From the NCBI RefSeq assembly GCF_006345805.1, contig NC_043006.1, positions 102,486,001 to 102,550,000 of the forward strand: 64,000 nucleotides of DNA. Reading direction: 5' to 3'. Both the position numbers and the translations under genes were made by a program. The first letter of the stretch is position 1; every line of letters starts with the position of its first letter. Positions 1 to 59,687 of this stretch are shown here, one piece after another. This DNA is from Octopus sinensis (Eukaryota). A model generated the notes under the pieces. It did not search any database. It was given only the letters and a program-made list of their open reading frames with translations, and was not told the DNA's origin.

Positions 1-46
1 ATTAAATTTAATCAATAAATTAATTAGTTTATCTTTAATCTTTCAG

Positions 47-168
47 AGCGAAGTGATTTACATGGCGTGAAACCATTTTCTTATTTGGTGCTAAACCTTC
101 ACAAACCACTTGTGCCCAGTATACCAACTCTTATGACACTTCAGGAAGTCCATATGTTGTTCTCAGAG
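47..168 (+). CDS. M3A oligopeptidase A-like gene, internal exon (first in window): RSDLHGVKPFSYLVLNLHKPLVPSIPTLMTLQEVHMLFSE
   Basis: tttcag acceptor at 41-46 and GAG/gtattg donor at 169; open frame resembling the M3 segment P.LL...EV..LFHE; joins in frame with 1779. The gene continues upstream of the window. Confidence 0.9.
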
Positions 169-566
169 GTATTGACAGTTTATCTTTAACCCAGCCCTGT
201 ATTCTAATATCAGTTCATTACTCAGTTCATTTGCAGGTGCTGTCAAGGGATTGATTCATGCCAACACGGGTTAGGTGGTTTGACCAGGGCTGACAAGCTG
301 GAGAGCTGCACCAGGTTCCAGTCTGATTTGGCCTGGTTTCTACAGTTGGGTGCCCTTCCTAACACCAGCCACTTTACAGAGTGTGCTGCGTGCTTTTTAC
401 ATGCCATCATTGACCTTTCATTCAAGTGTGTGTTAGTGTGGATACAGCGTAGCTAAGAAGTTCACTTCGCAACCACGTGGTCCCACAAAATCACTTGCCT
501 CAGGTCAAACCAAATCTTGAGTGAAATTGGGTTGACAGAAACTGTGGGGAAACCCATCAAATATAT

Positions 567-638
567 TGTACCTATAATTCAGGGGTACCTATAATTCAGA
601 GGTACCTATAATTCAGGGGTACCCATAATTCAGAGGTA
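567..638. repeat. Minisatellite, ~4 x 17 bp (GGTACCTATAATTCAG[G/A])
   Basis: Directly visible tandem units. Confidence 0.9.
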
Positions 639-1097
639 CTTTTGTGTCATGCACTGTATCATGCTGATTCTGCCTAAGGATTATGTTAAGGATATACATG
701 TCTGTGGAATACTCAGCCACTCATTAATTCTATGGGTGGGTAATTCATTTGAGTGACTGAATCCTCACTGTCAAAACCAACAGAGATCCATTTACTTACT
801 TATATGTGTGGTGTGAGTTAGTTAGTTAGTTAGTTAATTATTTGGCTTAAAAAGCAAAAAGCAAGGCCATGTAGGGGAACATGGAGTTATGTACAGGGTG
901 GTGTTCATGTAAAGAGTTCAGGCCACTTGTGGTCAAGGGAGACTTTGAACCGAGTGGTCATCGGCATCTTCACTATCTCGTCTGGCAGCTTTAATCATTA
1001 ACTAAATTATCAATCAGATGTATGCTTTGCTTCCATTTTGTTTTACCCTTTTATGACTGCAACCACTGTTTATTGTGTGACAGGTAAGGGCATGTCT

Positions 1098-1318
1098 GAG
1101 GTGGTGAGCTGGCAGAAATGTTAGCACGCCGGGCGAAATGCATAGCCGTTACGTTCTGAGTTCAAATTCCGCCGAGGTCGACTTTGCCTTTCATCCTCTC
1201 GGGGTTGATAAACTAAGTACCAGTTACGCACTGGGGTCGATGTAATCGACTTAATCCCTTTGTCTGTCCTTGTTTGTCTCTTCTGTGTTTAGCCCCTTGT
1301 GGGTAGTCAAGAAATAGG
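1098..1318 (+). mobile_element. SINE, GGTGAGCTGGCAGAA family
   Basis: Same family at ~3718-3930, 15895-16090, 36146-36360 and 57755-57968 (minus), and fragments elsewhere. Confidence 0.85.
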
Positions 1319-1354
1319 TAAGGACATGTCTCCTTGGCGTCTGTCCCTCTAGGA

Positions 1355-1668
1355 CAGTGGTTCTCAACCAAACGCCATAAGATTGTGGGTCCTATAAGAT
1401 TTGTGGAGAAGGGGGTCCACACAAGAAAAATCGTAAATTGGGTCCACAGTTGTAATTTATGAGTCCATGAAAAAATTTTGCTTTAGGTGTATTCATTGCA
1501 AGAAGCAGCTACGTTTCTTTCTCTGACATTTTACATAATACAACCTACACAAGTAATTGTGTGATCAACAAAATAGGAATTTTGAAAGAAGTATCTATGA
1601 AACTAGTTTTTAAATGGCTATGGGGGTCCACCTGAATAAAATAGTAATAATCTGGTTGTGAACCACTG
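1355..1668. mobile_element. hAT-like MITE
   Basis: TIRs CAGTGGTTCTCAACC / GGTTGTGAACCACTG with subterminal GGGGTCCA motifs; TSD eroded. Confidence 0.75.
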
Positions 1669-1778
1669 CTTTGGATGGAGTTTTTAAAAAAATGGTCTTC
1701 TTCTTAGAAATGAAACTGTTTATAATGATAATGATATTTGTCATATTTCCTTGATAAATTCATTCTGTTTTATTCCAG

Positions 1779-1983
1779 TTTGGTCACGGTCTACAACAAA
1801 TGCTAACTACAGTTCCATACAGTGAGATAGCAGGTCAAAGAAATGTGGAATGGGATGCACTTCATGTCTGCTCCAGTTTCATGACCATGTGGCTATCTGA
1901 TGCACGTACCCTGAAAAGTTTAACATCTCACTATCAGACAGGTGAACCCATGCCCGATGAAATGGTGGACACACTTCTTAAAG
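1779..1983 (+). CDS. M3A oligopeptidase A-like exon: FGHGLQQMLTTVPYSEIAGQRNVEWDALHVCSSFM...HYQTGEPMP
   Basis: ttccag acceptor, G/gtaatc donor; matches oligopeptidase A motifs FGHGL..ML, VEWDAVELPSQFM and HY.TGEP.P. Confidence 0.95.
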
Positions 1984-2521
1984 GTAATCTTTATTTATAT
2001 CTTTGGTTTGTGTGTGAGAGAGGTGGGGTCTGTGGGTATTTGCATGTATAAAGGCACAATGGGTTTTAAGATGAAAATATTCAACTATTAATTTTCTCAT
2101 ACATATTGAGCTTCTTTCAATTTCCCTAACCAAACATACTCACAAAGCTTTGGTTGGCCTGGGGCTGCATTAGAAGACATCTGAGGGCTAAACTGAAAAC
2201 CATGTGGTTGTAAAGCAAACTCCTGTCTGTATTTAGTCATTTTTCCATATTTGCATGGTGGACTAATTTTAACTTTCTTTTCTCTCATTATAAATTTGAG
2301 CAGAAGCTGTCTGGGTTTTTTGCAGGTGGTTGTTATTCTTATTGTTAACCATTCAACAATGAAGTACAAACACAACCTGCTTTTGTCAGTTAAGTAAAAC
2401 TGAAGCACACTACAGTTATACACTTATGTTCATTGCCCATGAATACAACACAATAATTGTCATAAAATTTGAATTCATAACTATTTCATCAGAGCTGCAC
2501 ATTCATTCTTCCTGCTGATAT

Positions 2522-2910
2522 GGATGGAAGCACTCTGTCGGTTACGACGACGAGGGTTCCGGTTGATCCGAATCAACGGAACAGCCTACTCGTGAAATTA
2601 ACGTGTAAGTGGCTGAGCACTCCACAGACACATGTACCCTTAACGTAGTTCTCGGGGATATTCAGCGTGACACAGAGAGTGACAAGGCCGGTTCTTTGAA
2701 ATACAGGTACAACAGAAACAGGAAGTAAGAGTGAGAGAAAGTTGTGGTGAAAGAGTACAGCAGGGATCACCACCATCCCCTGCCGGAGCCTCGTGAAGCT
2801 TTTAGGTGTTTTCGCTCAATAAACACTCACAACGCCCGGTCTGGGAATCGAAACTGCGATCCTACGACTGAGAGTCCGCTGCCCTAACCACTGGGCCATT
2901 GCGCCTCCAC
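2522..2910 (-). mobile_element. Full-length tRNA-derived SINE
   Basis: A/B-box-like head GGAGGCGCAATGGCCCAGTGG...; 12-bp TSD TCCTGCTGATAT (2510-2521, 2911-2922). Confidence 0.88.
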
Positions 2911-3990
2911 TCCTGCTGATATCAATGATTAACGATACAATAGACTGCAGTGTTTTCTTTTTTGTTTTATTTGAAGCAGTGTATCATCATTTCATTTAAT
3001 TATTTTCCACGCTGGCATGGGTTGGGTGGTTTGACAGGACCTGGCAAGGTCAGAGGCCGCACCACGCTCCATTATCTGTTCTGGCATGGTTTCTATGGCT
3101 GGATGCCCTTCCTAATGCCAACCATTTTACAGAGTGTACAAAGAGTGCTTTTTACATGACACCACCATTAGTATCAATTCTGATGTGAAGAACAGGTTTT
3201 CTTGAATACAGCAAGGCATCAGGTGTCTTGGTCCTTTGTCAAGGTGCTGGGAGATGTATGGTTGTGTAAATCAATCCAGCACATGACTGGTACTTGCTTT
3301 ATTAACCATCAATTCATGGAAGTCAGACCTGACATGGGCAAGATTTGAATTCAGAATGTAATCAAAATGAGCAAGTCTGCCACTCTCCTGAATCTGTCAT
3401 CCAGCATTCTTTGTAATGATAAAGTTCAATGAATTATACAATTATATTGTGGTGGCTGTTGTTTAGCACCAGGTCTTTCCTAGTCTAACAAATCTATGAT
3501 AGAAGGCATTCCAACCAAGGCCCTCCTGCTTTTTTGTCTATCTTGCCTGGCTTTGACCATTGTACTCCTTTTTACCAAGATGGTTGGATCTAATTTCAAG
3601 GAAGTTTGAATGTTATTTCTAGCAGGTCAACATCCCCTTTTGGTTCAGATTAAGTTATATATTTTCTAGCAGTTTGTCCATTTAATTATTAATATTAATT
3701 ATATTATCTAATTAAAGCAGTGAGCTGCCAGAATCATTAGTTCACCGGGCAGAGTGCTTAGCAAATTTTCACCCCTCTTTATTTTCTGAATTTAAATTCT
3801 GCCAAGGTTGACTTTGCCTTTCATCCTTTTGGGGTCTATAAAATAAGTACCAGTTGAGTACTGTGGTCAATGTAATTGACTTAGTTCCTCCCCTGATATC
3901 CTAGCCTTGTGCCAAAATTTGAAACCAATATTAATTATTTAATTTGATTCTATTTCTGATATGGCTTTTTATAAAATTTGTCATTGTCAG

Positions 3991-4066
3991 GTCAGAAACA
4001 CATGATCGGATTTGATATGATGCGACAGCTCTACCTGAGTGCATTAGACATGGAATTATATATCAG
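3991..4066 (+). CDS. M3A oligopeptidase A-like exon: (G)QKHMIGFDMMRQLYLSALDMELYI
   Basis: tgtcag acceptor, AG/gtaagt donor; phase 1 in, phase 2 out; matches M3 RQL....DMELH. Confidence 0.92.
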
Positions 4067-5079
4067 GTAAGTACTCTGTTTCTCTGCTTATGTGGTGCAA
4101 ATCATATCAACAAAATGATGGTGCTAATGATATCAGCAAACTGACAGTGCTCATGATATCTGCCAAGTGATGGTGCCAATGTGCTAATGATATCGGCAAA
4201 CTGACCCCTACAAATCCTTCATTTCAATATTCATTTCTTTCACAGATACATGAAGGTCTATGACTTAGTGGTTAGCATGTTGCACTTGTGGTTTTGCTTC
4301 CCAGATTGAATGGTGCATTATATTCTTGAGCTAAACAATTCATTTCATCTTTCTCCAGTTCACTTAGCTGTAAACTCTGCAATAGTCTCACCCAATTCAG
4401 GGGCCACAGTCACTTGTACAAGATGGAAAACATGTAACTGGCCTCATGGTCCTCGGGCTCAGGACAATACTTACTTGCATAGACACACAGACATGAAATT
4501 GTGTGCTTAGCTTCAATTTACACCTTCTCTTCATGTCTTTAATCACATAGTGGTCTTTGCAATGATGGTTTTGGGCATGGCAATAATGGTGGTGAATGGC
4601 ATGCCTAACAAAAAAATTACTTTAAATTCTTTTAGGGGTAAGCCTTGTCTCGTGTGGCCTGCTTCTCGAGAAATGGTGTTCATGCCTGAGACAGGAAATG
4701 GGAAGTTTGTGAATTTGCTGAGATCTTGTTTTTACGTTCATCCTTTTTCAAAATCCTCAAGTTAAAGTTGGGATGTGCTTTGGAGGTGCTTTAAAGTGTC
4801 CCAGAAGTAGAGTAGTTATAGTAATTGATACCTAGAAGGACAGTAATTAGAACAAATATATCAAAAAGCAATTTCTTATATAAAGACAAGGGTCATACGT
4901 TTTGTAGGAATGGAGAGTAAGCAGTCAGTCGAAGGAAAACCAGTATATGACTGGTACTTATTTCACTAGAGATATGAAAGACAAAGCCAAACATCAGCAA
5001 AATTTGAACATCAAATGTAGTTTGAAACAGGCTTCCTGCCATCTCCACAACTCCAATATCTTCATTACCACTTGCATAA

Positions 5080-5376
5080 TCTTTATATATAAAACTGAAG
5101 TTGTGTGTGTGAGTCTGTCTCCTCCGATTTAGATTCCTAACTACTCCCACATTTTGCAGTGCATTTTAACCAAAAGTGGATATCTTATAGTCGTGATTCA
5201 TATCGAGCCCTTCTGGGTATTAGCGCGCGTCTACGATGATAAAAAAATTTACCATCATTTTTTCGCATTTTTAATGCATTTTTTGCATAAGATTATCTTA
5301 TAAGGGAAGTAACTCTGTAAAAATGCTTATATAGTTATTTCCCTTATACCCGAGCAACGCCGGGCGATACTGCTAG
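5080..5376 (+). mobile_element. Non-autonomous Helitron
   Basis: A|TC 5' end, CCCGAGCAACGCCGGG hairpin, CTAG|T 3' end; homologous to 21372-21728. Confidence 0.8.
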
Positions 5377-5448
5377 TATATCATAACTTTATCCTTTTTC
5401 ATCTCATATCAATCCTTTTTTCTCTGTTATTTTTTCATGAAATTCCAG

Positions 5449-5596
5449 CAAAGAACACTGGCATGAAGTAATGAATCGCATCTGGGATGACTACATGTTA
5501 CTACCTCTCAGTGAAGACGATGCCCATCCTTGCTCTTTCACCCATATTTTCTCTGATCAACATCCAGCCGCTTATTACTCTCATAAGTGGTCTGAA
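5449..5596 (+). CDS. M3A oligopeptidase A-like exon: KEHWHEV...CSFTHIFSDQHPAAYYSHKWSE
   Basis: ttccag acceptor, GAA/gtaagt donor; matches M3 FSHIF.GGY.AGYYSY.WAE. Confidence 0.95.
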
Positions 5597-7550
5597 GTAA
5601 GTTGCAACCTACCTTTTTTTTATTTTTTCTGATTTTTTTTTTTGACATTACATTAACTTTATTTCAATTCTTAATTTTAAAAGATGAAACAGAAAGAAAA
5701 TAAAAATAAAAAAAAATTAAAGAAAATAGATTGGGGGTGGTGGGCCACATGTCCTAGAACAAGTGGGGTACTCAGCTGCACCCCACAGTAATGACTGCAA
5801 CGGCATTACTGTGGAGAATGGGCAGTGACACCCACTGCAGTAGCCACTCCACCACGCAGGGCTCATTTCTCCAACGGGCTGCTGCCATCCCTATTTTGCA
5901 GAGGAAATCAGTAGTCTCGATGGCAAGTGGCACAAACTGATAACATCCAGCCAGGACCCTGTACTGAGTGATTTTTTTCCTCCTCCACAATATGGGTGGC
6001 AACAGCAGGGTTTTGTTTGTGGTTTCTTTTATTGGATTGTAGCTATGCTTCAAATGCCTCAAAGAGTTTTAAAAGATCAAATCTATCTCAGTACTTATTT
6101 TAAACTCTGCTCCTTATTCTGTCATTTTCTTCTGAGCTGCTAGATTACAGGGACATAAACACACATGCACAGAGCAGGCATCCATATAGTTTCTGTCGAT
6201 TCAATTAGAAAGCAGATGCTTGCCCTCCACCATGCCTGCCAACCCAGCATGACATTATCTTGCCACCTGCATCAGCTGCCACATACTTAAAGCTGTGGGA
6301 GTTGAAGATTATCTATTTCTTTCATGCCTCATTTGAATTGAAAGGCAATATGTCCATAGCCATACATGCACACGTATTTAATCTGCGTATGTACACATTA
6401 CTGGATACTCATTGACTCTTCTGAATTTATCTGTCCTGTCTTTGTCATCCTCTAGAGTGTCCAGAAATTCCCTCCCCTCATCAGCCAAGCCTAGTTAACC
6501 CTTTAGAATTCAATCCAGCCATATCCAGCCCAAATATTTTGCTCTTTTGTTAAAACTGGCCATATCTAACCTTTCTCACCTACCCTACAGTGTCATTCTA
6601 AAAATATACAAATACACCATTGAACTCTTGAAGCTGCAAGATAATGCATGATTAATTCAAAATAATGCAAATAAATAAACAATATATTTGAGAAAGAAGT
6701 CTGAATGCGAAAGGGTTTAAGTTGCTGATGACCCAACCATCCAGCAGATTGTATTGGGCTACAGGTTAATAATAATAGTGCTCGTAGTAATGTCACACTG
6801 CTATGCAAATCCTATAATTAAAGGGATATGTGGCTGTATATCTATCATCATATCTGACACAAGTGAAAAAGGTCCAAACACACCCTCCAATTTAACACCA
6901 TTGTCTGGTCTTTGTGTTTTTTTTAGGCCAGTTCAGTCCACAAGTGTTTGGAGCAGAGCTCCTGTTTCCTACAGATGTTCAGTCCAAAGATCAAGCTACA
7001 TCAATATCACCAGTGTGGGAGAGCAGCAAGCAAAGGACAAAGACATCACTCCCCTCCCCATCATTTGGTCAATTTATATGAAAAAACATAAATCTATTCA
7101 GGGATAGGAAAATCTTATCCTGGTACCTATTATTCAGCTAAAGAAGTTGAGGCAAATATATAACTGTCATGTCTAGAGTTGCAGTAGAATGCCTAGACTG
7201 AGATCTGAACTCATGACTCTTTTGTTCAGTTGTCTGATATCTAAACATCTCAGCTATTTCACTTTGGTGCAAAGTTTGGTAATAATAGCATTCCCTAATA
7301 ATAAGAGTTACCATGTTAACAGCTGGATCAATTCCAGGAGTAATTTGATTCTTTTCAAGATTTTTTGCTTCAGTTTTCACACTTTCATCATAATGCAGCA
7401 TCCACTTCCTCAGGATGGCATGGGTTGGACGGTTTGACATGGTTTGACCAGTTGGAGTATTGTGCCATGCACCAATGTCTACTTTAGGCGTGGTTTCTAT
7501 GGCTAGATTCCCTTCCTAACAGAAACTAAATTTAAATGGTCTCCTTTCAG

Positions 7551-7630
7551 ATGATAGCAGCTGACATCTTCGCTGCTTTTGAAGAAGTTGGTCTGGAACA
7601 GACAGAGCTTGTATCAGCCATTGGAAGACG
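7551..7630 (+). CDS. M3A oligopeptidase A-like exon: MIAADIFAAFEEVGLEQTELVSAIGR
   Basis: tttcag acceptor, CG/gtaagt donor; matches M3 ADAF.AFEE.GL....G.RF. Confidence 0.93.
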
Positions 7631-8491
7631 GTAAGTAACTGTGGAAGATGATCTCTTACGATTAATCTGTAAGCCATGAGTTGAGAGCTGAGTCCTGGAG
7701 GCTCCAGAAATTGAATATCATTTATAGTGATTATAGGCTTACGACACAATTTTCAAAATTCATAAAATGTTTGTTGAGATAGGGGATAAATCCTGGTGCT
7801 TTAAGGAGGGGGTCTTCTTCCTTGTTTCCATGGATTTCTTCCCCTCTTACAATTTTATGTTGTAAAACACCAGAGAACCATTTCACTCTCATTGGAATTA
7901 AATGTTATTTGTAAATGTTTGAACATTAAAATTGTTGGAAATTTACAATATGAAACTCCTTCCATCAACTGAATTTACTGACATTTAAAATCTCCTAAAT
8001 ATTTATATTACTATTTGATATTTGTTCATAATTAGATACTTTAATTACCAGGTTTAGAATTCGAGTGGGTAGGCAGACATGGACCGAACTCAAAAGCTTC
8101 CAAATACCCTTTTTCACTTAACCATTATTCCGTAAAGATTTCTGTCATGATAGAATGTCATGTTAGTTCAGATGTACTTATATATTTTTCAAAATTTATA
8201 TTTATTTATAATGTAAAGTGCTTTTGTAGTTTACATTTTTCCAAACACATTTATGTGATAAACTGTAAAAGTAGCATTGACTGCTGTCCAGAATATATCT
8301 CATCTTTTTTTTTTTTTTTACTGTGATTGATAATTTTTAATTTAAGAAAAGTTTTCTTCAAATATTTTGACTATCAGAAATTGTAAAAAAACTATATAAT
8401 AATATAGATAAAATATTTCTTTTTCAATCATTTTAGGAGAAAAACATTTATTCTTAATCTGTTGTGTCATTTTCTTTTTTGTGCCTTATTT

Positions 8492-10124
8492 AACACACTC
8501 ACTGGTAAAATTTCCACTTATTTCTTAATTTTTATTTTCTAAAATTTTCATTGCGTCTTGCAACATTTTCAGTAGTTTTGACTCTGTCCATTATTTACAC
8601 TGCGTTCCCTTTTGTTTGTTTGTGCGCATGTGTGTGAGTCATTGTGTGTGTGTGTGTTTGCATGTGTATGTATGTGTGTTTGCATGTGTATGTATATATG
8701 TATGTATGTATGTATGTGTGTGCATCTGTATGTACGTATCCTGCACATATATGTGCTTGCCTGTCTGTCTTTGTGTATTTTCTATGTATGTGTGTGTGAG
8801 TGTGTGCATGTGTTATGTAACTATGTACCATGTTTGTATGTGCATTTTGATATGCGTGGATCCATGTCTCCATATGTGTCTGTTCATATAGTCTATATAC
8901 CTATCCGTCTGTATATTGATCTTTCTGAAGGTTCGTGTATACAGGGGGAACTAGAAAGAAATTAGATAACGTTATACATAATGATACCAGTGGTACCTGC
9001 CCTAGATATAGAAACAAAGAATGGAATAGAGTACAAAGATCTTGTGACAAAGCAAACAGGGCAAACACGTAGTATAAAACCGACAAATATCAAGGAGTGA
9101 TGTTTGTAGAGGCCACAACCCATGGAGAGCTAGCCCGTAGATTTAGAAAAGCTCTGAAGGAGACCAAACTCAACATTAAGATTGTTGAAAAGCCAGGGAA
9201 CTCCGTCAGATCACAACTATGTAGGATGTACCCGTTTAAGAATACCACATGCACCAATGATAACTGCATGGTATGTAGGATTAGCCCTGGCATTAAATGT
9301 AGAACTCAAAATGTAGTTTACAGCATAAGATGCATAGAAGGTGCTTGTAAGGACATGAACATGATGTAGATAGGGGAGACATCTAGGAGCATTGCGGAAC
9401 GGATAAATGAACATCTGAGACAATATGACGAGAGAAAACAGTCCTCCATGCTCTACCAACATGTCAAAGACCACCATGGAGGTAACTTGGGTCAACTTGA
9501 CATCCGCATCTTATCCAAGCACCCAAAAGACCCAACATTAAGACAAATACAGTAGTACGTCCTTATAAATGAAACCTCCCCAATACTAAATAGGAAATAT
9601 ACACAGTAAATACCATACCTCCATACCCACAGTTTACACAGGTAGAGTAGAAGAGTTAGTGGACTGTTAGGTAGATAAATGTATGTATGTGGGTGAGTGT
9701 GTGTGTATGCCCTTTTTTTTTTATTTCTGTATGTAAGCATATATATATATATATGTAAATAAACAGATCAATATACAGACGGATAGGTATATAGACTATA
9801 TGAACAGACACATATGGAGACACGGATCCACACATATAAAGATGCACATCCATACATACAAACATGGTACATAGTTACACACACATATACAAACACATGC
9901 TCACACACACACACACACATAGAAAATACACAAACAGGCAAGCACATAAATATGCAGGATACGTACACACATACATACACACATATACGTACATGCATGC
10001 ATAGGCACACACACTGACCCATGCACACAAACAAACAAAAGGGAACGCAGTGTAAATAACGGACAGAGTCAAGACTATTGAAAAGGTTGCAAGACGCAAC
10101 GAAAGTTTTACCGGTGAGTGTGTT
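8492..10124 (+). mobile_element. Penelope-like element remnant: GIY-YIG endonuclease fragment between inverted terminal repeats
   Basis: Translation near 9097-9600: CRTQNVVYSIRC...M*IGETSRSIAERINEH...LYQHVKDHH; inverted repeats 8492-8922 / 9765-10124. Confidence 0.8.
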
Positions 10125-10324
10125 CAAATATTTTGACTATCAGAAATTGTAAAAAACTTTATATAATACGGATTAAATATTTCATTTTCAATCATTTTAG
10201 AAGAAAAACATTTATTCTTAATATGCTCTCATTATGATTATTATTATTCACTTTTTTTTTTATTTAATCCTCATAAGTGTGTTTTGGCTGAATAACTTTG
10301 TTTTGCTTTTTGAATTGTTTCCAG

Positions 10325-10436
10325 ATTTCGCGACACATTTCTTGCCCTGGGTGGCTCAATGTCAGCCAACAAGATTTTCAGAATGTTCCGTGGACGAGAT
10401 CCATCTCCAGATGTCATCAAGAGAATATGGAAATAG
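10325..10436 (+). CDS. M3A oligopeptidase A-like terminal coding exon: FRDTFLALGGSMSANKIFRMFRGRDPSPDVIKRIWK*
   Basis: ttccag acceptor in phase 2; matches M3 C-terminal FRDT.LA.GGS......F..FRGR.P; TAG at 10434-10436. Confidence 0.95.
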
Positions 10437-16695: not shown

Positions 16696-16863
16696 TCAAC
16701 TTGTGGCACTGATTTCTTTCAACTTATGTTTTTCAAGATTTTTTACTCGCCAACTTTCCATCTCTATTAAATTCATGGCATTAAAAGATTTACCCAAGTT
16801 CTTCAAATCATTGTTACCATTCGTTTGCCATTGTACTCGGGCACAATTCTCATCAACAGACAT
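16696..16863 (-). CDS. SAT-like gene A exon 5 (terminal): MSVDENCARVQWQTNGNNDLKNLGKSFNAMNLIEMESWRVKNLEKHKLKEISATS*
   Basis: ttgcag acceptor in phase 0; aligns with the SAT1 last exon (C....N......K...A..L...E.WR); TGA at 16696-16698; total spliced CDS 522 nt, 173 aa. Confidence 0.9.
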   Translation of the reverse strand: MSVDENCARVQWQTNGNNDLKNLGKSFNAMNLIEMESWRVKNLEKHKLKEISATS

Positions 16864-17082: not shown

Positions 17083-17592
17083 CCATAAATCTTTGAGTAT
17101 AGTCCGCCCTTGAGTATAATATGCAGGGGATTTTTAGGGGGCTGTACCTCAGAAAAACCTAAACCTTGTGCATAATACGCACTCCTTCTCTAACCTGAGT
17201 TGTGCGTAATTAAGCCAGTAGCACCTAGTCGAACAAACACTTCCGCGCAAGCGTAATACAATAATGGTGATGTTCTTAACTGTTATATGGGAATGTAAAT
17301 ATGTTTGCAAATTGTCTTTGTTACATGTTATTCTGTGTTCTGAATACTTTTATTTTAATAAATGTTGCTTACTGCAAGTTATGGATGATTCTTTTATGAC
17401 TTCATTGCTTTCAGGCTTAGCTTAAGGTATTTTCGTGCCCGACATCACAAAATGCATTGCCGGACAGCAAATAGAGATTCGGACATTGCTTAGAAGATAT
17501 TTTTCCTTTTTAACCTTGTATATAGTACGCACTAGGGATTTTGACCTTTAAATTTTGGGGAAAAAATGCGGATTGTACTCGAAGATTTACGG
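17083..17592. mobile_element. pogo/Tigger-like MITE in gene A intron 4
   Basis: TA-flanked; TIRs CCATAAATCTTTGAGTATAGTCCGC ... GCGGATTGTACTCGAAGATTTACGG. Confidence 0.8.
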
Positions 17593-18898
17593 TATCTTCT
17601 CTTTTACTTATTTCAGTCACTGGACTGCAGCCATGCTGGGGCCTTGAAGTGCTGAAGAAATTGATCAGCCCCAACTACTTTTTTTTTTTAAGCCTGATTA
17701 CTTATGCTATCAATCTCTTTTGCTGAACTGCTATCTTACAGGGATGTAAACAAACCAGCACCTGTTGTCAAACACTGATGAAGAATAAACAAACTAAAGA
17801 AACACACACAATGGGCTTCTTTTAGTTTCCATCAACCAAATCTACTTGCAAAACTTTAGTTGGCTAGGGGCCACAATAGAAACAGTTACTTGCCCAAGGG
17901 GCTGCACAGAGGCTGAACTCAAGCCACATCTGGGATCTTTTTTATCCAACAAGAACTCAAAGGAATGGAGTAACCATTCATAGCACCAACATGGAATGTA
18001 AACATCAACACCACACCATTCTGGTGGTAACAAATGAAACTGTGGAATATCAACAGTCATGTACATTTGCATGTGTGCATGCACTCACACACACACACGA
18101 GATAAGCTTCTTACAGTTTCCATTGACCAAATTCACATAAGGCATTATTTAGCTTGGAAACTATAGAAGTACACTTACTAATGACAATATTTCTATTTGA
18201 AAAAAGGAAATCTTTCCTGAAATATTATAGGATCATTAAAACAACCTATATTAAATAAAACAGTATATGCACAGCATGGGATTGAACCTAAAACCACAAT
18301 TTTGAAGCTAACTTCTTAACCACAGTCATGCCTACGTAATATATTCAGTATATCAAATTGTTATATAGACATGCCCTTGGACAAGGTTATATTACCCATT
18401 TTGTCTTTCAAAGCGCAACCTGCACACCAAAGCTCCAAGGACAAGAGAGCTTATATAAGGGTCAAGTTCCAGAGTTTTATCAAAACTACCAACCCCTTGA
18501 TATAGCGGTCACCCTTCCCCACATTATAATTTCCTTCACTCATATCAATACTTCTCCTAAAATCATTCTTCTTCAAATTTGTTCCTGCTTCTATTCCTTC
18601 CCTATCAATATTTTGTCACAATACTGTTGTTCTACACACAGAAAGGAAAAAAAAAAGGAAAAACCCACCTCTTATATTAGGTGGCTAATAACATTTTTAT
18701 TTGAAAAGGACAAATATTTCCTGAAATATTATAGAATCATTAAAACAACCTATATTAAATAAAACAGTAGCCTTTCTCATTGTTTATTTGAATTACTCAA
18801 AATTTAAAAAAATTCTTTTTTCCGAACATATCATTTAAAAACGTACTGCAATGCTTTAAGCAAATTACAATACAAAGACAAAAAATAATTCTATTTAC

Positions 18899-19059
18899 CT
18901 TGCACAGGAAATGAAAGAGATCTTCACAGATGGACTCATATTCTGGTAGTGGTAACACGTACATGTCAGTTATTTCTATAGACTTGCTTTCCCATGTGGA
19001 GTATATGTAGTGGTAGAACATATATCCGACCAGTGGCCCCGTGCTTGGTCTGTTGTCTG
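18899..19059 (-). CDS. SAT-like gene A exon 4: ADNRPSTGPLVGYMFYHYIYSTWESKSIEITDMYVLPLPEYESICEDLFHFLCK
   Basis: ttctag acceptor, AAG/gtaaat donor; 161 nt; aligns with SAT1 [26 protein letters not shown]...KNLSQ. Confidence 0.92.
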
Positions 19060-19101
19060 CTAGAAAATCACAATGACAACTCAAACAATGAGCATGCAAA
19101 T

Positions 19102-20797: not shown

Positions 20798-20878
20798 CTT
20801 TTGAAGGATCTTTATGATTCCATTCAGCAACGAGGATATTAGATAAGTTCTCTCCATTGAAGCAGTGGGTTTTTAGAT
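20798..20878 (-). CDS. SAT-like gene A exon 3: DLKTHCFNGENLSNILVAEWNHKDPSK
   Basis: ttctag acceptor, G/gtgagg donor; 81 nt, phase 1-1; aligns with SAT1 DLLEDGFGEHPFYHCLVAE. Confidence 0.9.
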
Positions 20879-21728: not shown

Positions 21729-22375
21729 TTATGGTTCAGTTTTAGTTTCCATCCTCTGTACCTCAATACAATCTTGCAAACCTTCCACCCACCCACTTCT
21801 ACACACCTCTTGTCTTGAACTTAATTCACAGAGCTTTCTGTGTATGTGGTATATTATGAAGAACTGCAACCAGTGGTGAGAAGCAGTGAGTCATGTCTAA
21901 CCAATGCCAACATGGAAAAGGTAGACGTAAAACAGGGACCATGAGGATACATAAATCAGATGAATTTTAACAAATGGAATTAACCCTTTTGCATTTAAAC
22001 CAGCCAAAATATTCTGCATGTTTTATGTTCAAACTGACTTGATCTGGCCTCTCACACCTACCCAACAATGTCATTCGAAAAATAAGCAATCACATTATCA
22101 AAGTTTGAGATAATGATTGATTAATTCAAAACAATGAAAATAAATAAGTATTACATTTGACAGAGTAGTCTGAATGCCAAAGTGTTAAATTCAGATCACA
22201 AAGAGTCAGAAATTCATACCAGCTGATTGGTCCAAATACACCAACCTTCATGCTTTGGTGACTAATAAGCAACCAAGCAACAAAACTAAATCTTCATGTT
22301 TGTAAATGCACCAATTATTATTTCCCATTCAAGACTGACTGGAGCAAAGTTAAGCATTAAGGAACATTTACTTAC

Positions 22376-22421
22376 CATCCACAGAAGGTGGCGTTCTCTT
22401 TTCTCCAGCTTTTACTCGTTC
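22376..22421 (-). CDS. SAT-like gene A exon 2: ERVKAGEKRTPPSVD
   Basis: tattag acceptor, G/gtaagt donor; 46 nt, phase 0 to 1 like SAT1 exon 2; duplicated at 57311-57356. Confidence 0.88.
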
Positions 22422-22479
22422 CTAATATAGAAAACCAAAATATATTCTTATTATAGAACATTAGTTATACATTGAACAA

Positions 22480-29236: not shown

Positions 29237-29814
29237 GGTTAATATCTAGATCCGCACCCGGTGGAAAAAATGGAAACGCAAATGTGTAACAGTATATATA
29301 TGTGTGTGTGTATATATATGTGTGTGTGTATATATGTGTGTGTGTATATATATGTGTGTGTGTATATATATGTGTGTGTGTGTATATATATGTGTGTGTG
29401 TATATATATGTGTGTGTGTGTATATATATGTGTGTGTGTATATATATATATGTGTGTATATATATGTGTGTGTGTGTGTATATATATGTGTGTGTGTGTG
29501 TATATATATGTGTGTGTATATATATGTGTGTGTATATATATGTGTGTGTATATATATGTGTGTATATATATATATGTGTGTATATATATGTGTGTGTATG
29601 TATATATGTGTATGTATGTATATATGTGTGTGTATGTATATATGTGTGTGTATGTATATATATGTGTGTGTATGTATATATATATGTGTGTGTATGTATA
29701 TATGTGTGTATGTATATATATGTGTGTGTATGTATATATATGTGTATGTATGTATATATATGTGTATGTATATATGTGTATTTTTTCCACCGGGTGCGGA
29801 TCTAGATATTAACC
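29237..29814. mobile_element. MITE with perfect 35-bp TIRs and 8-bp TSD, body mostly microsatellite (Merlin-like termini)
   Basis: GGTTAATATCTAGATCCGCACCCGGTGGAAAAAAT at 29237-29271 and its reverse complement at 29780-29814; TAGTTTTT at 29229-29236 and 29815-29822. Confidence 0.85.
29293..29779. repeat. Compound (TA)n/(TG)n microsatellite, ~490 bp
   Basis: Directly visible; source of the spurious long ORFs at 29239-29869. Confidence 0.97.
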
Positions 29815-30057: not shown

Positions 30058-30123
30058 CTCGAATAACGCGATGATGAGTTGAGAGTCATCAGCTGTTGCT
30101 GGTCGCGAGACAATTACCGCCAT
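30058..30123 (-). CDS. SAT/SSAT-like GNAT gene A exon 1: MAVIVSRPATADDSQLIIALFE
   Basis: 66-nt coding exon ending GAG/gtttgt; aligns with SAT1 [22 protein letters not shown]; homologous to 59619-59687. Confidence 0.85.
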
Positions 30124-37828: not shown

Positions 37829-38412
37829 TGTAAGAATTAGCACTTCCTTCTCAAAGCTTGGATTCGAAATCAGACCCAAGAATCATTGGTCGTAAAATAC
37901 CAATGCACAAAAAGGCGCGAAATCAGAATCTCTTTGTTCTGACAAAAAATGATGGATCGTCTCCCTTCGACCTCTGACCCGAGCAGGTCAGGCGAAGTTT
38001 AACAGGACGACCAGCGACCTACTGTACGCAATAACACTCTTGCGGTATATATCTATTTTTCTGGCTATTTGAGATGTTATAAATAGAACGGAGAAATAGG
38101 TATCTAGAGAGAACCCGAACCAACGTTTAAGAGAACGACACGCATTTATGAGGACGACGAAAGAATAATCAGAAAGGTGACTCTGTCATGCATGATTTAC
38201 ACACACGCACACACACCACCATCAACATATTCTGCTTTAATGTGTATCCTGTATTATGCATTCCTTTAATATGTATTATTTGCAACCACTATTTAATATG
38301 CATTTTGTACAAGCGATGTGTAACATTGCTTACAAATTGATGTAGTGATAATAAATCTTTAATTTATTACAAAGCACTTATGTATTTATTAATACATCCC
38401 GCATCCACTACA
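37829..38412 (+). repeat. 5' LTR (584 bp)
   Basis: TGTAAG...ACTACA; near-identical to 43117-43697; contains TATAAATA and AATAAA. Confidence 0.97.
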
Positions 38413-43116: not shown

Positions 43117-43697
43117 TGTAAGAATTAGCACTTCCTTCTCAAAGCTTGGATTCGAAATCAGACCCAAGAATCATTGGTCGTAAATACCAATGCACAAAAA
43201 GGCGCGAAATCAGAATCTCTTTGTTCTGACAAAAAATGATGGATCGTCTCCCTTCGACCTCTGACCCGAGCAGGTCAGGCGAAGTTTAACAGGACGACCA
43301 GCGACCTACTGTACGCAATAACACTCTTGCGGTATATCTATTTTTCTGGCTATTTGAGATGTTATAAATAGAACGGAGAAATAGGTATCTAGAGAGACCC
43401 GAACCAACGTTTAAGAGAACGACACGCATTTATGAGGACGACGAAAGAATAATCAGAAAGGTGACTCTGTCATGCATGATTTACACACACACACACACAA
43501 CACCATCAACATATTCTGCTTTAATGTGTATCCTGTATTATGCATTCCTTTAATATGTATTATTTGCAACCACTATTTAATATGCATTTTGTACAAGCGA
43601 TGTGTAACATTGCTTACAAATTGATGTAGTGATAATAAATCTTTAATTTATTACAAAGCACTTATGTATTTATTAATACATCCACGCATCCACTACA
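43117..43697 (+). repeat. 3' LTR (581 bp)
   Basis: Differs from the 5' LTR by four small indels and two substitutions by my reading. Confidence 0.97.
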
Positions 43698-51173: not shown

Positions 51174-51341
51174 TTAGCAACTAGAACAAATTTTTTTCAG
51201 CTGATGCTTTTCAAGTTTCTTTGCAAGGCACTTTTCCACCTCTCTCGCATTCATGGCATTAAAATATTTGCCTAAGTTTTCCAAGTCATTGTTACCATTC
51301 GTTTTCCATTGCACTTGGACACAATTCTCATCAACAGACAT
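51174..51341 (-). CDS. SAT-like gene B exon 5 (terminal): MSVDENCVQVQWKTNGNNDLENLGKYFNAMNAREVEKCLAKKLEKHQLKKICSSC*
   Basis: ctgcag acceptor; 168 nt as in gene A; TAA at 51174-51176; total CDS 525 nt, 174 aa. Confidence 0.9.
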   Translation of the reverse strand: MSVDENCVQVQWKTNGNNDLENLGKYFNAMNAREVEKCLAKKLEKHQLKKICSSC

Positions 51342-51408
51342 CTGCAGGAAGAGAAAAGAGGAAAACACCCACAAATAAAAACTATGGTTTATAATGATTT
51401 TGCTGTTA

Positions 51409-52376
51409 CCATAAATCCTCGAGTATAATCTGCATTTTTTCCCAAAATTTAAAGGTCAAAATCCCTAGTGCGTACTTTATACGAGGTTAAAAAGGAAAAA
51501 TATTTTCTAAGCAATGTCCGAGTCTATTTGCTGTTCAGCAATGTTTATTCAGATGCATTTTGTGATGTCGAGCACGAAAATACCTTAAGCTAAGCCTGAA
51601 AGCAATGAAGTCATAAAAGAATCATCCATAACTTGCAGTAAGCAACATTTATTAAAATAAAAGTATTCAGAACACAGAATAACATGTAACAAAAACAATT
51701 TGCAGACATACTTACATTCCCATATAACAGTTAAGAACATCACCATTATTGTATTACGCTTGCGCAGAAGTGCTTGTTTGACTATGTGCTGCTGGCTTAA
51801 TTATGCATGAATTGTGCTTAATAGTTTAGTGCTAAATAGTTCATCCTGCTGTTTCTATTGACAATTTGCATTATTACCGTGGCAAAAAATAGATACTTAA
51901 TTAAATACCAGTTTTAAATGTTTGAACTACTGTGGGTCTTTACTAGGGTTTTTTATAAACGGGACTTAAACCTGTAAATTAATCTCCAATAAAACATTTT
52001 ATACATTACTTGCCCATAAAATGCCTCATAGATCTTATTCAGCTATGTTTAAACTTGAAGTTATATCATATGCTGAAGAGCATGGTAACAGGGCCGCCAG
52101 AAGAAAATTTGGTGTTGACGAAAGCAATGTCAGGTTATGGAGAAGAAATAAAGATGAAATTAAACAGATGCCAAAGATAAAGAAGTCAAGAAGGTAATAA
52201 TAAAGGACATTACCGTATACATTTTTATAAACCAAGGACGTTATATAGACCCCCTTGACTAAAGTTAGAGAAGGGGTGTGTATTATACACAAGGTTTAGA
52301 TTTTTTCAGAGGTACAGCCCCCTAAAAATCCCCTGCGTTTTATACTCAAGGGCAGACTATACTCGAGGAGTTACAG
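51409..52376. mobile_element. pogo-like internally deleted DNA transposon, same family as 17083-17592, opposite orientation
   Basis: TA-flanked TIRs; shares internal sequence with the MITE; carries a transposase N-terminal ORF. Confidence 0.85.
52021..52197 (+). CDS. 58-aa Brinker-type HTH DNA-binding domain of a pogo transposase (truncated)
   Basis: MPHRSYSAMFKLEVISYAEEHGNRAARRKFGVDESNVRLWRR matches the pogo/BrkDBD pattern; expression unknown. Confidence 0.6.
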   Translation: MPHRSYSAMFKLEVISYAEEHGNRAARRKFGVDESNVRLWRRNKDEIKQMPKIKKSRR

Positions 52377-54246: not shown

Positions 54247-54407
54247 CTTGCACAGGAAATGAAAGAGATCTTCACAGATGGACTCATATTCTGGTAGTGG
54301 TAACACGTACAGGTCAGTTATTCGTATAGTCATGCCTTCCCCTGAGGAGAATTGGTATTGGTAGAACATATATCCAACCAGTGGCCCCGTGCTTGGTCTG
54401 TCGTCTG
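54247..54407 (-). CDS. SAT-like gene B exon 4: ADDRPSTGPLVGYMFYQYQFSSGEGMTIRITDLYVLPLPEYESICEDLFHFLCK
   Basis: 161 nt; ttctag acceptor, AAG/gtaata donor; open frame. Confidence 0.92.
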
Positions 54408-54673
54408 CTAGAAAATCACGACAATTGTAAGAATGTGCATGTGAATATATAAACAGAAGCTCGACAAAGGAACAGATGGAAAATTCGCACACAAGACGTG
54501 GAGGTGCTCTTGTCTCATCAGTTATCATTCAAAAGGTCATTACAGTTTCACACCTTTAATGATAATATTGTTTATTTTTAGTTGTGTCAACAACAAAAAG
54601 CCGTTTGGGAATAATGAGCACACGTCAAGGACAGTAATGTAAACAAATGTGACACATGAACGTGAATATACAA

Positions 54674-54715
<42 letters not shown>

Positions 54716-55045
54716 ATGCATGCACGCACGCATGCACACACACACATGCATGCACGCACACACATTTCAGCAAGATACCTTCTCCTGTCCCTCTATCATA
54801 ATTTCATATCCCTGAGTTACATGCCAATCAGTTGAGGGGTCCTGTCTTGCAAGTACTTGGTAACCTCACCATTGCAAGGGCCACAAAAAATAGCACCCAC
54901 TACATTCTGTGAAGTGGTTGGTTTTAAGAAGTGCATCCAGTCATAGAATCCAACACAGACACAGTCAAGTTTGCTGTCAACACAGAGATGTGCCAGCTGG
55001 CCACCGAGACAGAGAGAAGAATGCAACACTGAACAAAAATCTCAC

Positions 55046-55126
55046 CTTTTGAAGGATCTTTATGATTCCATTCAGCAATGAGGATATTAGATAAGTTCTC
55101 TCCATTGAAGCAGTGGGTTTTTAGAT
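55046..55126 (-). CDS. SAT-like gene B exon 3: DLKTHCFNGENLSNILIAEWNHKDPSK
   Basis: 81 nt; one difference from gene A (V/I); intact ag/gt. Confidence 0.9.
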
Positions 55127-56470: not shown

Positions 56471-57310
56471 TATTATCTTTTAGTCACAAGAGAAGGCAGT
56501 GTCTATGACTTGTTACAGATCCTCTGACATTGGTGAAAGGGAGGAAGGCATCTTCAAATTGAAAGCCTGGTCCATGCAACAGAATGGACTTCAATAAAAG
56601 CACCCAAGGTGCCAGGTGGCAAATGTGTAGGTCAAGGCTGGATTTGAGCTTGGAATGTCAAGCACTGCAAGGTCTTGGGTCCAACATTCTTACATTTTGG
56701 CCAATCCACTATTCCAAAAGGATGAAAGCAAAAGTAACCTCAGCCACTCTTGAACTTAATTCACAGAGCTTTCTGTGTATGTGGTAGATTATGAAGAACT
56801 GCAACCAGTGGTGAGAAGCAGTGAGACATGTCTAACCAATGCCAGCATGGAAAAGGTAGACGTAAAACAGGGGCAATGAGGATACATAAATCAGATGAAT
56901 TTTAACAAATGGAATTAACCCTTTTGCATTTAAACCAGTCCCAAATATTCTGCATGTTTTATGTTCAAACTGACTTGATCTTGCCTCTCACACCTACCCA
57001 ACAATGACATTCGAAAAATAAGCAATCACATTATCAAAGTTTGAGATAATGATTGATTAATTCAAAACAATGAAATAAATAAGTATTACATTTGACAGAG
57101 TAGTCTGAATACCAAAGTGTTAAATTCAGATCACAAAGAGTCAGAAATTCATACCAGCTGATTGGTCCAAATACACCCACCTTCATGCTTTGGTGACTAA
57201 TAAGCAACCAAACAACAAAACTAAATCTTCATGTTTGTAAATGCACCAATTATTATTTCCCATTCAAGACTGACTGGAGCAAAGTTAAGCATTAAGGAAC
57301 ATTTACTTAC

Positions 57311-57356
57311 CATCCACAGAAGGTGGCGTTCTCTTTTCTCCAGCTTTTACACGTTC
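57311..57356 (-). CDS. SAT-like gene B exon 2: ERVKAGEKRTPPSVD
   Basis: Same splice sites as gene A exon 2; one synonymous difference (CGA/CGT). Confidence 0.88.
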
Positions 57357-57701
57357 CTAATATAGAAAACCAAAATATATTCTCATTATCAAACACCAGT
57401 TAAACTCTATAATTAGAATTAATTGTAAGTTTCATATATTCTATATTATTAAGGCATCTAATTATGAAGATTACAATTTTCTTATTATAGCTTTTTTGAA
57501 CACGTCAGCACCAAAAAGATCCAATTCTTTGATCAGTTTGATTTCTCATGAACAAATAATTCCCTGTCTTTCTTTAATCACATTGGTCATTCATTGGTCA
57601 TTCTTGATCACTCAGTGCTTTTGACACCCAACATTATCACCTCGTTATCTTTCAGAGAAAAGTTAAATTCAATAATTTATTGATGCAGACATGGTTCCAA
57701 G

Positions 57702-57968: not shown

Positions 57969-57971
57969 CTT

Positions 57972-57987
57972 ATATATATATATATAT

Positions 57988-58033
<46 letters not shown>

Positions 58034-58037
58034 TACA

Positions 58038-58098
<61 letters not shown>

Positions 58099-58112
58099 CA
58101 TCTATATATATA
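57972..58112. repeat. (TA)n microsatellite
   Basis: Directly visible; similar tracts at 12230-12295, 19105-19153, 23045-23063, 35793-35823, 57707-57738. Confidence 0.95.
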
Positions 58113-58114
58113 TC

Positions 58115-59618: not shown

Positions 59619-59687
59619 CTTGAATAAACCAGTAATGTGCTCACAGTCACCAGGTATTGCATACCGCGAAACAGGTACTGCTATCAT
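59619..59687 (-). CDS. SAT-like gene B exon 1: MIAVPVSRYAIPGDCEHITGLFK
   Basis: 69 nt ending AAG/gtatgt; retains SAT-like R.A...DC..I..L.K. Confidence 0.87.

Follow-up and report, generated by a model that had tools for sequence, protein, structure and literature searches.

The red and green opsin genes of primates and the RHD/RHCE pair are tandem paralogs homogenised by gene conversion, with small islands of divergence surviving in them. In the polyamine pathway, the antizyme inhibitor is an inactive homologue of ODC, that is, a pseudoenzyme paralog that regulates an active enzyme. Here we describe two tandem genes of Octopus sinensis, referred to as copy A and copy B, whose nearest relatives in both sequence and structure are SAT2 and SAT1 of the GNAT superfamily. 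They lie on the minus strand of contig NC_043006.1 (positions 102,486,001 to 102,550,000; this stretch of 64,000 nt is referred to as the window) and, together with a unit C located upstream, form a tandem trio in the order C-B-A. The fourth exons of A and B differ mostly within one short stretch that encodes a hairpin, and an earlier note on this DNA had attributed these differences to diversifying selection on ligand specificity in proteins that no longer catalyse. We consider that gene conversion between A and B, combined with relaxed constraint on a fast and dispensable copy B, is the best explanation overall, with a probability of about 55%.

Exon 4 of copy B is an open exon of 161 nt (54247-54407, minus strand, frame 2; translation DDRPSTGPLVGYMFYQYQFSSGEGMTIRITDLYVLPLPEYESICEDLFHFLCK), which corresponds to residues 66-119 of a 174-aa SAT-like protein and contains β3, the hairpin turn, β4 and a degenerate P-loop with the start of helix α3. 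The parts of this exon and its counterpart in copy A are as follows.

54247..54407, minus strand: exon 4 of copy B, frame 2, bounded by AG (acceptor) and GT (donor); its sequence is the same as exon 4 of the O. sinensis isoform X2 (P0006)
54361..54407, minus strand: 5′ part of B exon 4, homogenised with A, with the species-grouping sites 4, 20, 23 and 27 and a tandem tagCAG acceptor
54322..54360, minus strand: hairpin island of B, QYQFSSGEGMTIR, 39 nt, with 11 replacement and 0 silent differences from A
54247..54311, minus strand: 3′ run of B exon 4 identical to A, 65 nt (exon nt 97-161), the degenerate P-loop half
18899..19059, minus strand: exon 4 of copy A, with its hairpin, HYIYSTWESKSIE, at 18974-19012

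Each copy has five coding exons, and the exon labelled as exon 4 in the earlier note is indeed the fourth. The only further copy of it in the window is the one at 18899-19059 (minus strand), with 91.3% identity, 14 mismatches and no gaps. Codon by codon, 13 of the differences are replacements, spread over 11 codons, and one is silent (Val, GTC/GTT), in agreement with the 14 differences and the single synonymous one counted before. Within the hairpin island, A (HYIYSTWESKSIE) and B (QYQFSSGEGMTIR) differ at 11 nucleotides in 9 of the 13 codons with no silent difference, exactly as reported, and the P-loop half that had been described as identical is the same in both copies over the last 65 nt of the exon. 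The differences are more clustered than expected by chance, with 11 of the 14 inside a single 39-nt window (permutation p=0.0003) and an identical run of at least 65 nt (permutation p=0.007). The reported loss of the SAT1 W84 equivalent in B holds for O. sinensis but not for O. bimaculoides, in which the B copy keeps the Trp (QYIFSTWEGMTIQ).

We then compared silent and replacement divergence (dN/dS, the ratio of nonsynonymous to synonymous rates) by Nei-Gojobori counting. In exon 5, dS between A and B was 0.72 in O. sinensis and 1.05 in O. bimaculoides, with omega of 0.15-0.25, which shows that the A/B duplication is old; orthologues of O. sinensis and O. bimaculoides showed dS of 0.15-0.27, and introns diverged by 0.07-0.10. 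In exon 4, the paralogs showed dS of just 0.031 in O. sinensis and 0.095 in O. bimaculoides, compared to 0.25 (A) and 0.20 (B) for the orthologues. This exon has one silent difference between A and B where 15 are expected at the exon-5 rate (p=4e-8). None of the 15.7 silent sites within the 65-nt identical run differs (p=5e-5 against the exon-5 rate), and we read this run as a conversion tract.

Four-taxon site patterns were also examined. Exon 5 had 23 sites that group the paralogs and 2 that group the species. In exon 4, the paralog-grouping sites were 6, 50, 58, 72, 76 and 78, all but one in the hairpin, and the species-grouping sites were 4, 20, 23, 27 and 143, all outside it (5:0 in the hairpin and 1:5 in the flanks, Fisher p=0.015). 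At the silent sites 20, 23 and 27, both O. sinensis copies have G, G and C, while O. vulgaris and both O. bimaculoides copies have A, A and T; thus, in the O. sinensis lineage, silent changes that arose in one of A and B have passed to the other. Site 143 follows the same pattern, being derived and present in both O. sinensis copies. In the region of the 65-nt run, O. bimaculoides B has six sites of its own, which are absent from O. sinensis B. The B copy of O. bimaculoides also has 7 private sites in exon 3 and that of O. sinensis has none, which points to conversion by A.

Around exon 2, a block of 659 bp (21813-22470 in A and 56748-57405 in B) is 97% identical between the copies with an intron-2 divergence of 0.022, whereas the introns beside it diverge by 16-19% or fail to align; this block is a recent conversion tract. 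Paralogs closer than orthologues at silent sites, shared derived sites and mosaic boundaries were all found, and interparalog conversion between A and B has affected exon 2, exon 3 and, on either side of the hairpin, exon 4. As the four-way intron alignment around exon 4 consists mostly of gaps, the ends of the tracts within the introns are not placeable.

Because conversion has reset the silent sites, the 13:1 ratio of replacement to silent differences in exon 4 is not a measure of dN/dS. The earlier note had named gene-conversion boundaries as something that would undo its selective reading, and they do account for most of the pattern, given the dS of 0.03 against 0.72-1.05 and the species-grouping sites in the flanks. 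More generally, replacement and silent counts between tandem paralogs can mimic positive selection once conversion resets the silent sites, and codon tests on such converted paralogs need recombination-aware partitions and orthologues. The locus resembles the opsin and RHD/RHCE pairs in that exons are more alike than introns, silent sites are alike between paralogs beyond the likeness of orthologues, and derived sites are shared within a species. It resembles them also in that a short, functionally placed segment keeps paralog-specific residues and in that the homogenised block is a substrate for unequal crossover. In contrast to those pairs, the A/B island is conserved in one copy only, and selection would be a candidate reason for its retention.

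The encoded proteins were compared to PDB sequences by phmmer, which gave SAT2/thialysine acetyltransferase (2bei) at E=4e-10 and SAT1 at about 1e-6. AlphaFold2 (AF2) models of A and B, with predicted local distance difference test (pLDDT) scores of 86 and 85, respectively, have the SSAT topology and the GNAT alpha/beta fold, and their best Foldseek matches were SSAT and SSAT2 (TM 0.69-0.79). The SAT1 homology proposed in the earlier note is thereby supported. A tblastn search with human SAT1 (a sequence validated by its Pfam match) did not find exon 4 because the relationship is too distant for BLAST. No Pfam match was obtained for A or B even at E<=10, nor for C (P0016) or for the Argonauta protein (P0003), while the controls P0038, P0045, P0070 and human SAT1 matched PF00583 (Acetyltransf_1) at 1e-14 to 1e-18.

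The P-loop in both A and B reads E-Y-E-S-I-C, and the Motif A pattern Q/R-x-x-G-x-G/A expected after β4 was not found. The replacements R104E and G107S fall in columns that hold R in 78 and G in 66 of the 89 representatives in our family alignment, from which all column counts given here were taken. The catalytic Tyr (SAT1 Y140) is replaced by Gly (Y142G; Tyr in 71/89) and the equivalent of SAT1 E92 by Thr (E95T; Glu in 70/89), while the equivalent of D93 is kept. Copy A retains W87, K90, E154 and W156; O. sinensis B has G87, M90 and C156 at three of these positions, and O. bimaculoides B has W87 and C156. The premise of a degenerate P-loop in non-catalytic proteins is consistent with this loop, with the replaced Tyr and Glu and with the missing Pfam match, and A, B and C are most likely pseudoenzymes which have lost acetyl-CoA binding and catalysis, a well-founded inference from their sequences. 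The family with a weakened P-loop spans the coleoid cephalopods, and decapod relatives from Sepia and from transcriptome assemblies (P0015, P0017 and P0034) still match Pfam GNAT models, with the loop R-N-K-G-I-A kept in P0034. The full degeneration of the GNAT signature thus seems to be specific to octopods.

Copy A has the motif Y-S-T-W of the β3-β4 hairpin in common with SAT2 and SAT1, agrees with human SAT2 at 6 of the 13 hairpin residues and keeps the equivalents of D93 and W154. A and B differ from these enzymes by the change of R-x-x-G-x-G to E-Y-E-S-I-C, of Tyr140 to Gly and of Glu92 to Thr, and by going undetected by Pfam GNAT models; O. sinensis B, in addition, is without both tryptophans. 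Like pseudoenzymes of the antizyme inhibitor type, they keep the enzyme fold with catalytic and cofactor residues lost, and copy A keeps residues of the substrate side. Unlike those, the SAT-like family is restricted to cephalopods. By analogy to SAT1, in which the acceptor site of the dimer spans both subunits, a dead SAT paralog could bind a ligand or heterodimerise.

In the AF2 models, the 13 codons of the island cover the end of β3, the T-W-E turn and the start of β4 (A residues 81-93), and the HMMER alignment places them at SAT1 78-90. A docking and molecular dynamics study on PDB 2b58 gave Y78, Y90, D82, W84 and W154, and also T80 and L88, as lining the spermine site at the dimer interface (bioRxiv 10.1101/2024.10.18.618978), which upholds the statement that the SAT1 segment with D82 and W84 lines the polyamine channel. 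Five of the six pocket-equivalent hairpin positions (Y78, T80, D82, W84, L88 and Y90) differ between A and B, and the objection that the sites might face away from the pocket does not apply. The non-pocket positions of the hairpin differ at 4 of 7, without clear enrichment in the pocket. The AF2 models of A and B agree in fold and hairpin, so that the model of B does not discriminate between the explanations considered below.

The direction of the changes was determined with Argonauta as the outgroup, a status that comes from the exon-5 tree with moderate support. Before the split of O. sinensis and O. bimaculoides, the B stem acquired H16Q, Y19F, K25M, S26T and E28Q (numbered by codon of the exon), and the A stem acquired G24S. 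The changes I18Q (2 nt), T21S, W22G and Q28R, at sites 54, 55, 63, 66 and 85, are found in O. sinensis B only. Nine of the ten polarisable hairpin changes are unique to B and one is unique to A (relative rate p=0.02). Exon 5 gave 18 changes unique to B and 6 unique to A (p=0.02), with a B stem about 3 times longer in the tree; B is therefore fast across the whole gene, at about 3 times the rate of A, and not in the hairpin alone.

The hairpin of A, on the other hand, is identical in the O. vulgaris unit and agrees at 12/13 positions with O. bimaculoides A and at 11/13 with Argonauta, whereas that of B differs at 4/13 positions between O. sinensis and O. bimaculoides, the only two B orthologues compared. 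In O. sinensis B, W87G replaces a Trp found in 74/89 relatives by a Gly found in 0/89, and K/R90M places a Met where K or R occurs in 78/89 representatives. The second Trp, present in 84/89, is replaced in B of both species (W156C). B is still constrained overall and is not a dead gene, as its omega in exon 5 was 0.30, below 1 at p=0.018.

The locus of O. vulgaris (L005) has C and one hybrid unit, in which B exons 1-2 are joined to A exons 3-5. C and the first two exons of B are colinear with O. sinensis; within the homogenised exon-2 block the locus then switches to A, where 108 B-diagnostic sites before 33563 give way to 73 A-diagnostic ones in a run beyond 34202. O. vulgaris lacks about 34 kb, equivalent to ~22470-56749 of the window, and B exons 3-5 and A exon 1 are removed with it. 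From these sequences, the deletion is apparently the expected product of an unequal crossover between the converted blocks. The crossover region lies at 33569-34162 of L005.

We infer relaxation rather than adaptation as the source of the changes in B, and relaxed constraint is their most likely cause because B is about 3 times faster gene-wide, both tryptophans are replaced, and O. vulgaris lacks the 3′ half of B through a deletion. The history is then as follows. The octopod tandem trio C-B-A, derived from SAT1 or SAT2, has kept the GNAT fold and most likely lost catalysis, and short tracts of conversion between the paralogs have homogenised exon 2, exon 3 and the two sides of exon 4 again and again. 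Such tracts erased silent differences along with replacement ones, and the locally divergent hairpin was not overwritten. Paralog-specific divergence is therefore left as an island with an apparent dN far above dS, placed at the tip of the β3-β4 hairpin, from which much of the acceptor channel is built in SAT1. Within the island, nearly all change was on B, first the five stem replacements and then five base changes in O. sinensis alone. The ancestral acceptor site was probably relaxed or lost in a semi-redundant B with a dispensable 3′ half, and the ancestral hairpin is preserved in A.

Several observations weigh against this explanation. The hairpin has 0 silent differences at 7.7 silent sites where about 3.6 are expected if it was never converted (p=0.007); it was therefore homogenised at some point and acquired only replacements afterwards, as positive selection predicts. 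On the terminal branch of O. sinensis B, the 39-nt island took 5 changes, whereas the intron rate predicts 1.4-1.95 (p=0.016-0.048, uncorrected for the choice of window). The A-type and the C-type hairpins are each conserved from Octopus to Argonauta, which suggests that it serves as a functional determinant specific to each paralog and is not a free loop. In addition, the O. vulgaris deletion is known from one assembly and could be polymorphic.

It is possible, and we hold it only tentatively, that positive selection acting after the last homogenisation retuned the acceptor hairpin of B in a non-catalytic binding protein, and that selection also shields the island from conversion. This would fit the 11 hairpin differences being all replacements (nd=11, sd=0, S=7.7), the rate of the O. 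sinensis B tip at ~2.5-3.5 times that of introns, the change of 5/6 pocket equivalents, the conserved A-type and C-type hairpins and the purifying selection on B elsewhere; the island, moreover, persists between converted flanks. However, a divergent patch can block conversion or heteroduplex extension mechanically, with no need for selection. The probability of no silent change among 10-11 hairpin changes is only 0.047-0.092 (0.047-0.073 for 11), depending on the transition bias, for a window chosen post hoc. Exon-wide, that of at most 1 silent change among 14 is 0.08-0.15. In neither case is the excess of replacement over silent change significant against neutrality.

Furthermore, 5/6 pocket against 4/7 non-pocket positions leaves the enrichment unclear, and the 9:1 bias toward B in the hairpin has the same sign as the gene-wide 18:6 and is not obviously above it. 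W87G, K/R90M and W156C remove family-invariant binding residues and are not swaps among plausible binding residues. The B hairpin is not conserved between the two Octopus species, and B exon 4 is absent in O. vulgaris. The diversifying selection proposed in the earlier note was thus not borne out, since dN/dS is not significantly above 1 and conversion with one-sided change in B explains most of the pattern.

A wider proposal, speculative and in our view rather unlikely, is that the trio represents an undescribed octopod family of dead SAT-derived proteins in which the hairpin determines the ligand or partner. Its members would be binders of amines or polyamines, or heterodimeric regulators of the active enzyme, in reproductive tissue, with B adaptively retuned and its specificity residues shielded from conversion by selection. 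In the oviducal gland of O. maya, a 'diamine acetyltransferase 2' transcript was reported from reverse transcription quantitative PCR to be up in mated females (PMC8976471). Within the A/B family, the primers used there correspond to the junction of exons 2 and 3 and to the 5′ part of exon 4, with one mismatch each to O. bimaculoides B, and do not separate A from B. They predict an amplicon of 130 nt, which becomes the published 127 nt if splicing is at the downstream CAG acceptor. Should A still bind polyamines but leave them unacetylated, polyamine biology would have a second pseudoenzyme regulator beside the antizyme inhibitor. The family of predicted SAT-like pseudoenzymes in octopods is unstudied and is now annotated as 'thialysine N-epsilon-acetyltransferase'.

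The changes specific to O. sinensis B (54, 55, 63 and 66 within 13 nt, and 85) might alternatively represent one or two multinucleotide mutations or a templated patch, fixed by drift, which we consider improbable. Two of the changes are adjacent and four fall within 13 nt on one short branch, and 3/5 are toward the state of paralog C (CAA-TTC against CAC-TTC in C, and CGA at codon 28). However, when the 86-kb locus was scanned for a possible donor, the O. sinensis B hairpin matched only itself and its orthologue, and the five older replacements of the B stem, common with O. bimaculoides, would be left unexplained. Conversion of the B hairpin from paralog C was rejected, as the matches are non-contiguous and no more than expected by chance (3/5 at p=1/3, p~0.2).

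The three units of O. sinensis are all complete, SAT1/SAT2-like and of five exons each. Exons were placed with the O. bimaculoides and Argonauta hians proteins, and all splice sites are canonical. Copy A encodes 173 aa and copy B 174 aa. The exons other than exon 4 are the following.

59619..59687, minus strand: B exon 1 (MIAVPVSRYAIPGDCEHITGLFK)
57311..57356, minus strand: B exon 2, within the 659-bp block 56748-57405 that is 97% identical to A 21813-22470
55046..55126, minus strand: B exon 3, one base apart from A exon 3
51174..51341, minus strand: B exon 5, including the stop codon, not converted and of ancient divergence; Cys replaces the SAT1 W154 equivalent
30058..30123, minus strand: A exon 1 (MAVIVSRPATADDSQLIIALFE)
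22376..22421, minus strand: A exon 2
20798..20878, minus strand: A exon 3
16696..16863, minus strand: A exon 5 with the stop codon; the E-x-W motif (MESW) is retained

Unit C lies beyond the window at 10001-20373 of L004, a stretch of O. sinensis chromosome CM016868.1 (window 6696-64000 is identical to L004 86323-29019 reversed). The gene order C-B-A followed by a convergent Peptidase_M3 gene is common to O. sinensis and O. bimaculoides, and Argonauta has one A-like gene adjoining Peptidase_M3. In the window, about 1-10436 on the plus strand (L004 82583-86323) contains the 3′ part of this Peptidase_M3/TOP_N gene, which is thimet oligopeptidase- or neurolysin-like and convergent with copy A.

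The NCBI gene LOC115216299 merges C, B and A of O. sinensis (L004 10001-76323; window 16696 to beyond 64000) into chimeric isoforms X1-X4, all of which begin at C exon 1 and none of which includes B exon 1, B exon 5 or A exon 1. Taken literally, A and B would be alternative exon sets of one transcription unit, with mutually exclusive exons 4A and 4B placing two hairpins on a shared scaffold. Isoforms X1 and X2, which differ only by exon 4A or exon 4B and both have exon 5A, would agree with this, and so would the O. vulgaris and older O. bimaculoides models that join B exon 1 to A exons. We give it little credence, as each unit has its own ATG exon, its own stop exon and canonical splice sites, conserved in O. 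bimaculoides, for which a clean B-only model exists (P0002), and the O. vulgaris 'hybrid' is a genomic deletion and not a product of splicing. Short reads are unable to assign the A/B junctions because the two copies are nearly or fully the same over exon 2, exon 3 and the opening 22 nt of exon 5, and chimeric models are expected from such reads. Therefore, we read the chimeric isoforms of LOC115216299 as artefacts.

At exon 4 of both copies, the acceptor is a tandem tagCAG (54405-54410 and 19057-19062, minus strand), and isoform X3 is without the Ala codon. In O. bimaculoides A (L003 9963), the first AG of this tandem acceptor is mutated (TTG), and only the downstream CAG is usable. The O. 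bimaculoides locus has an assembly gap (N run) at about 6350 of L003, where exon 2 of A is expected, and because of this gap the NCBI protein for O. bimaculoides A is a partial one of 96 aa. A exon 1 is fast between O. sinensis and O. bimaculoides (30058-30123 against L003 2555-2620; pN 0.15, pS 0.28). This exon, which no annotated model contains and which falls in the O. vulgaris deletion, has lost its conserved D-C-E-H motif in O. sinensis and may be a first exon in decay.

Exact look-ups of the A and B proteins, and of P0009 and P0011, returned no records, and a literature search found no paper that mentions these loci. A tblastx comparison of copy A with copy B did not reveal exons 2 and 3.

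In intron 4, A and B share a block of 400 bp at 91% identity whose orientation is reversed in one copy relative to the other (17203-17594 against 51407-51807). Just upstream of B exon 4 there is a long (CA/TG)n microsatellite, and AT/TA-rich tandem arrays are common to the upstream regions of A and B (54666-54765, 29292-29781 and 57971-58113). Between A and B, in a GC-richer stretch, two direct repeats of ~585 bp (37829-38412 and 43117-43697), 98.8% identical and 5.3 kb apart, look like the long terminal repeats of a young retrotransposon.

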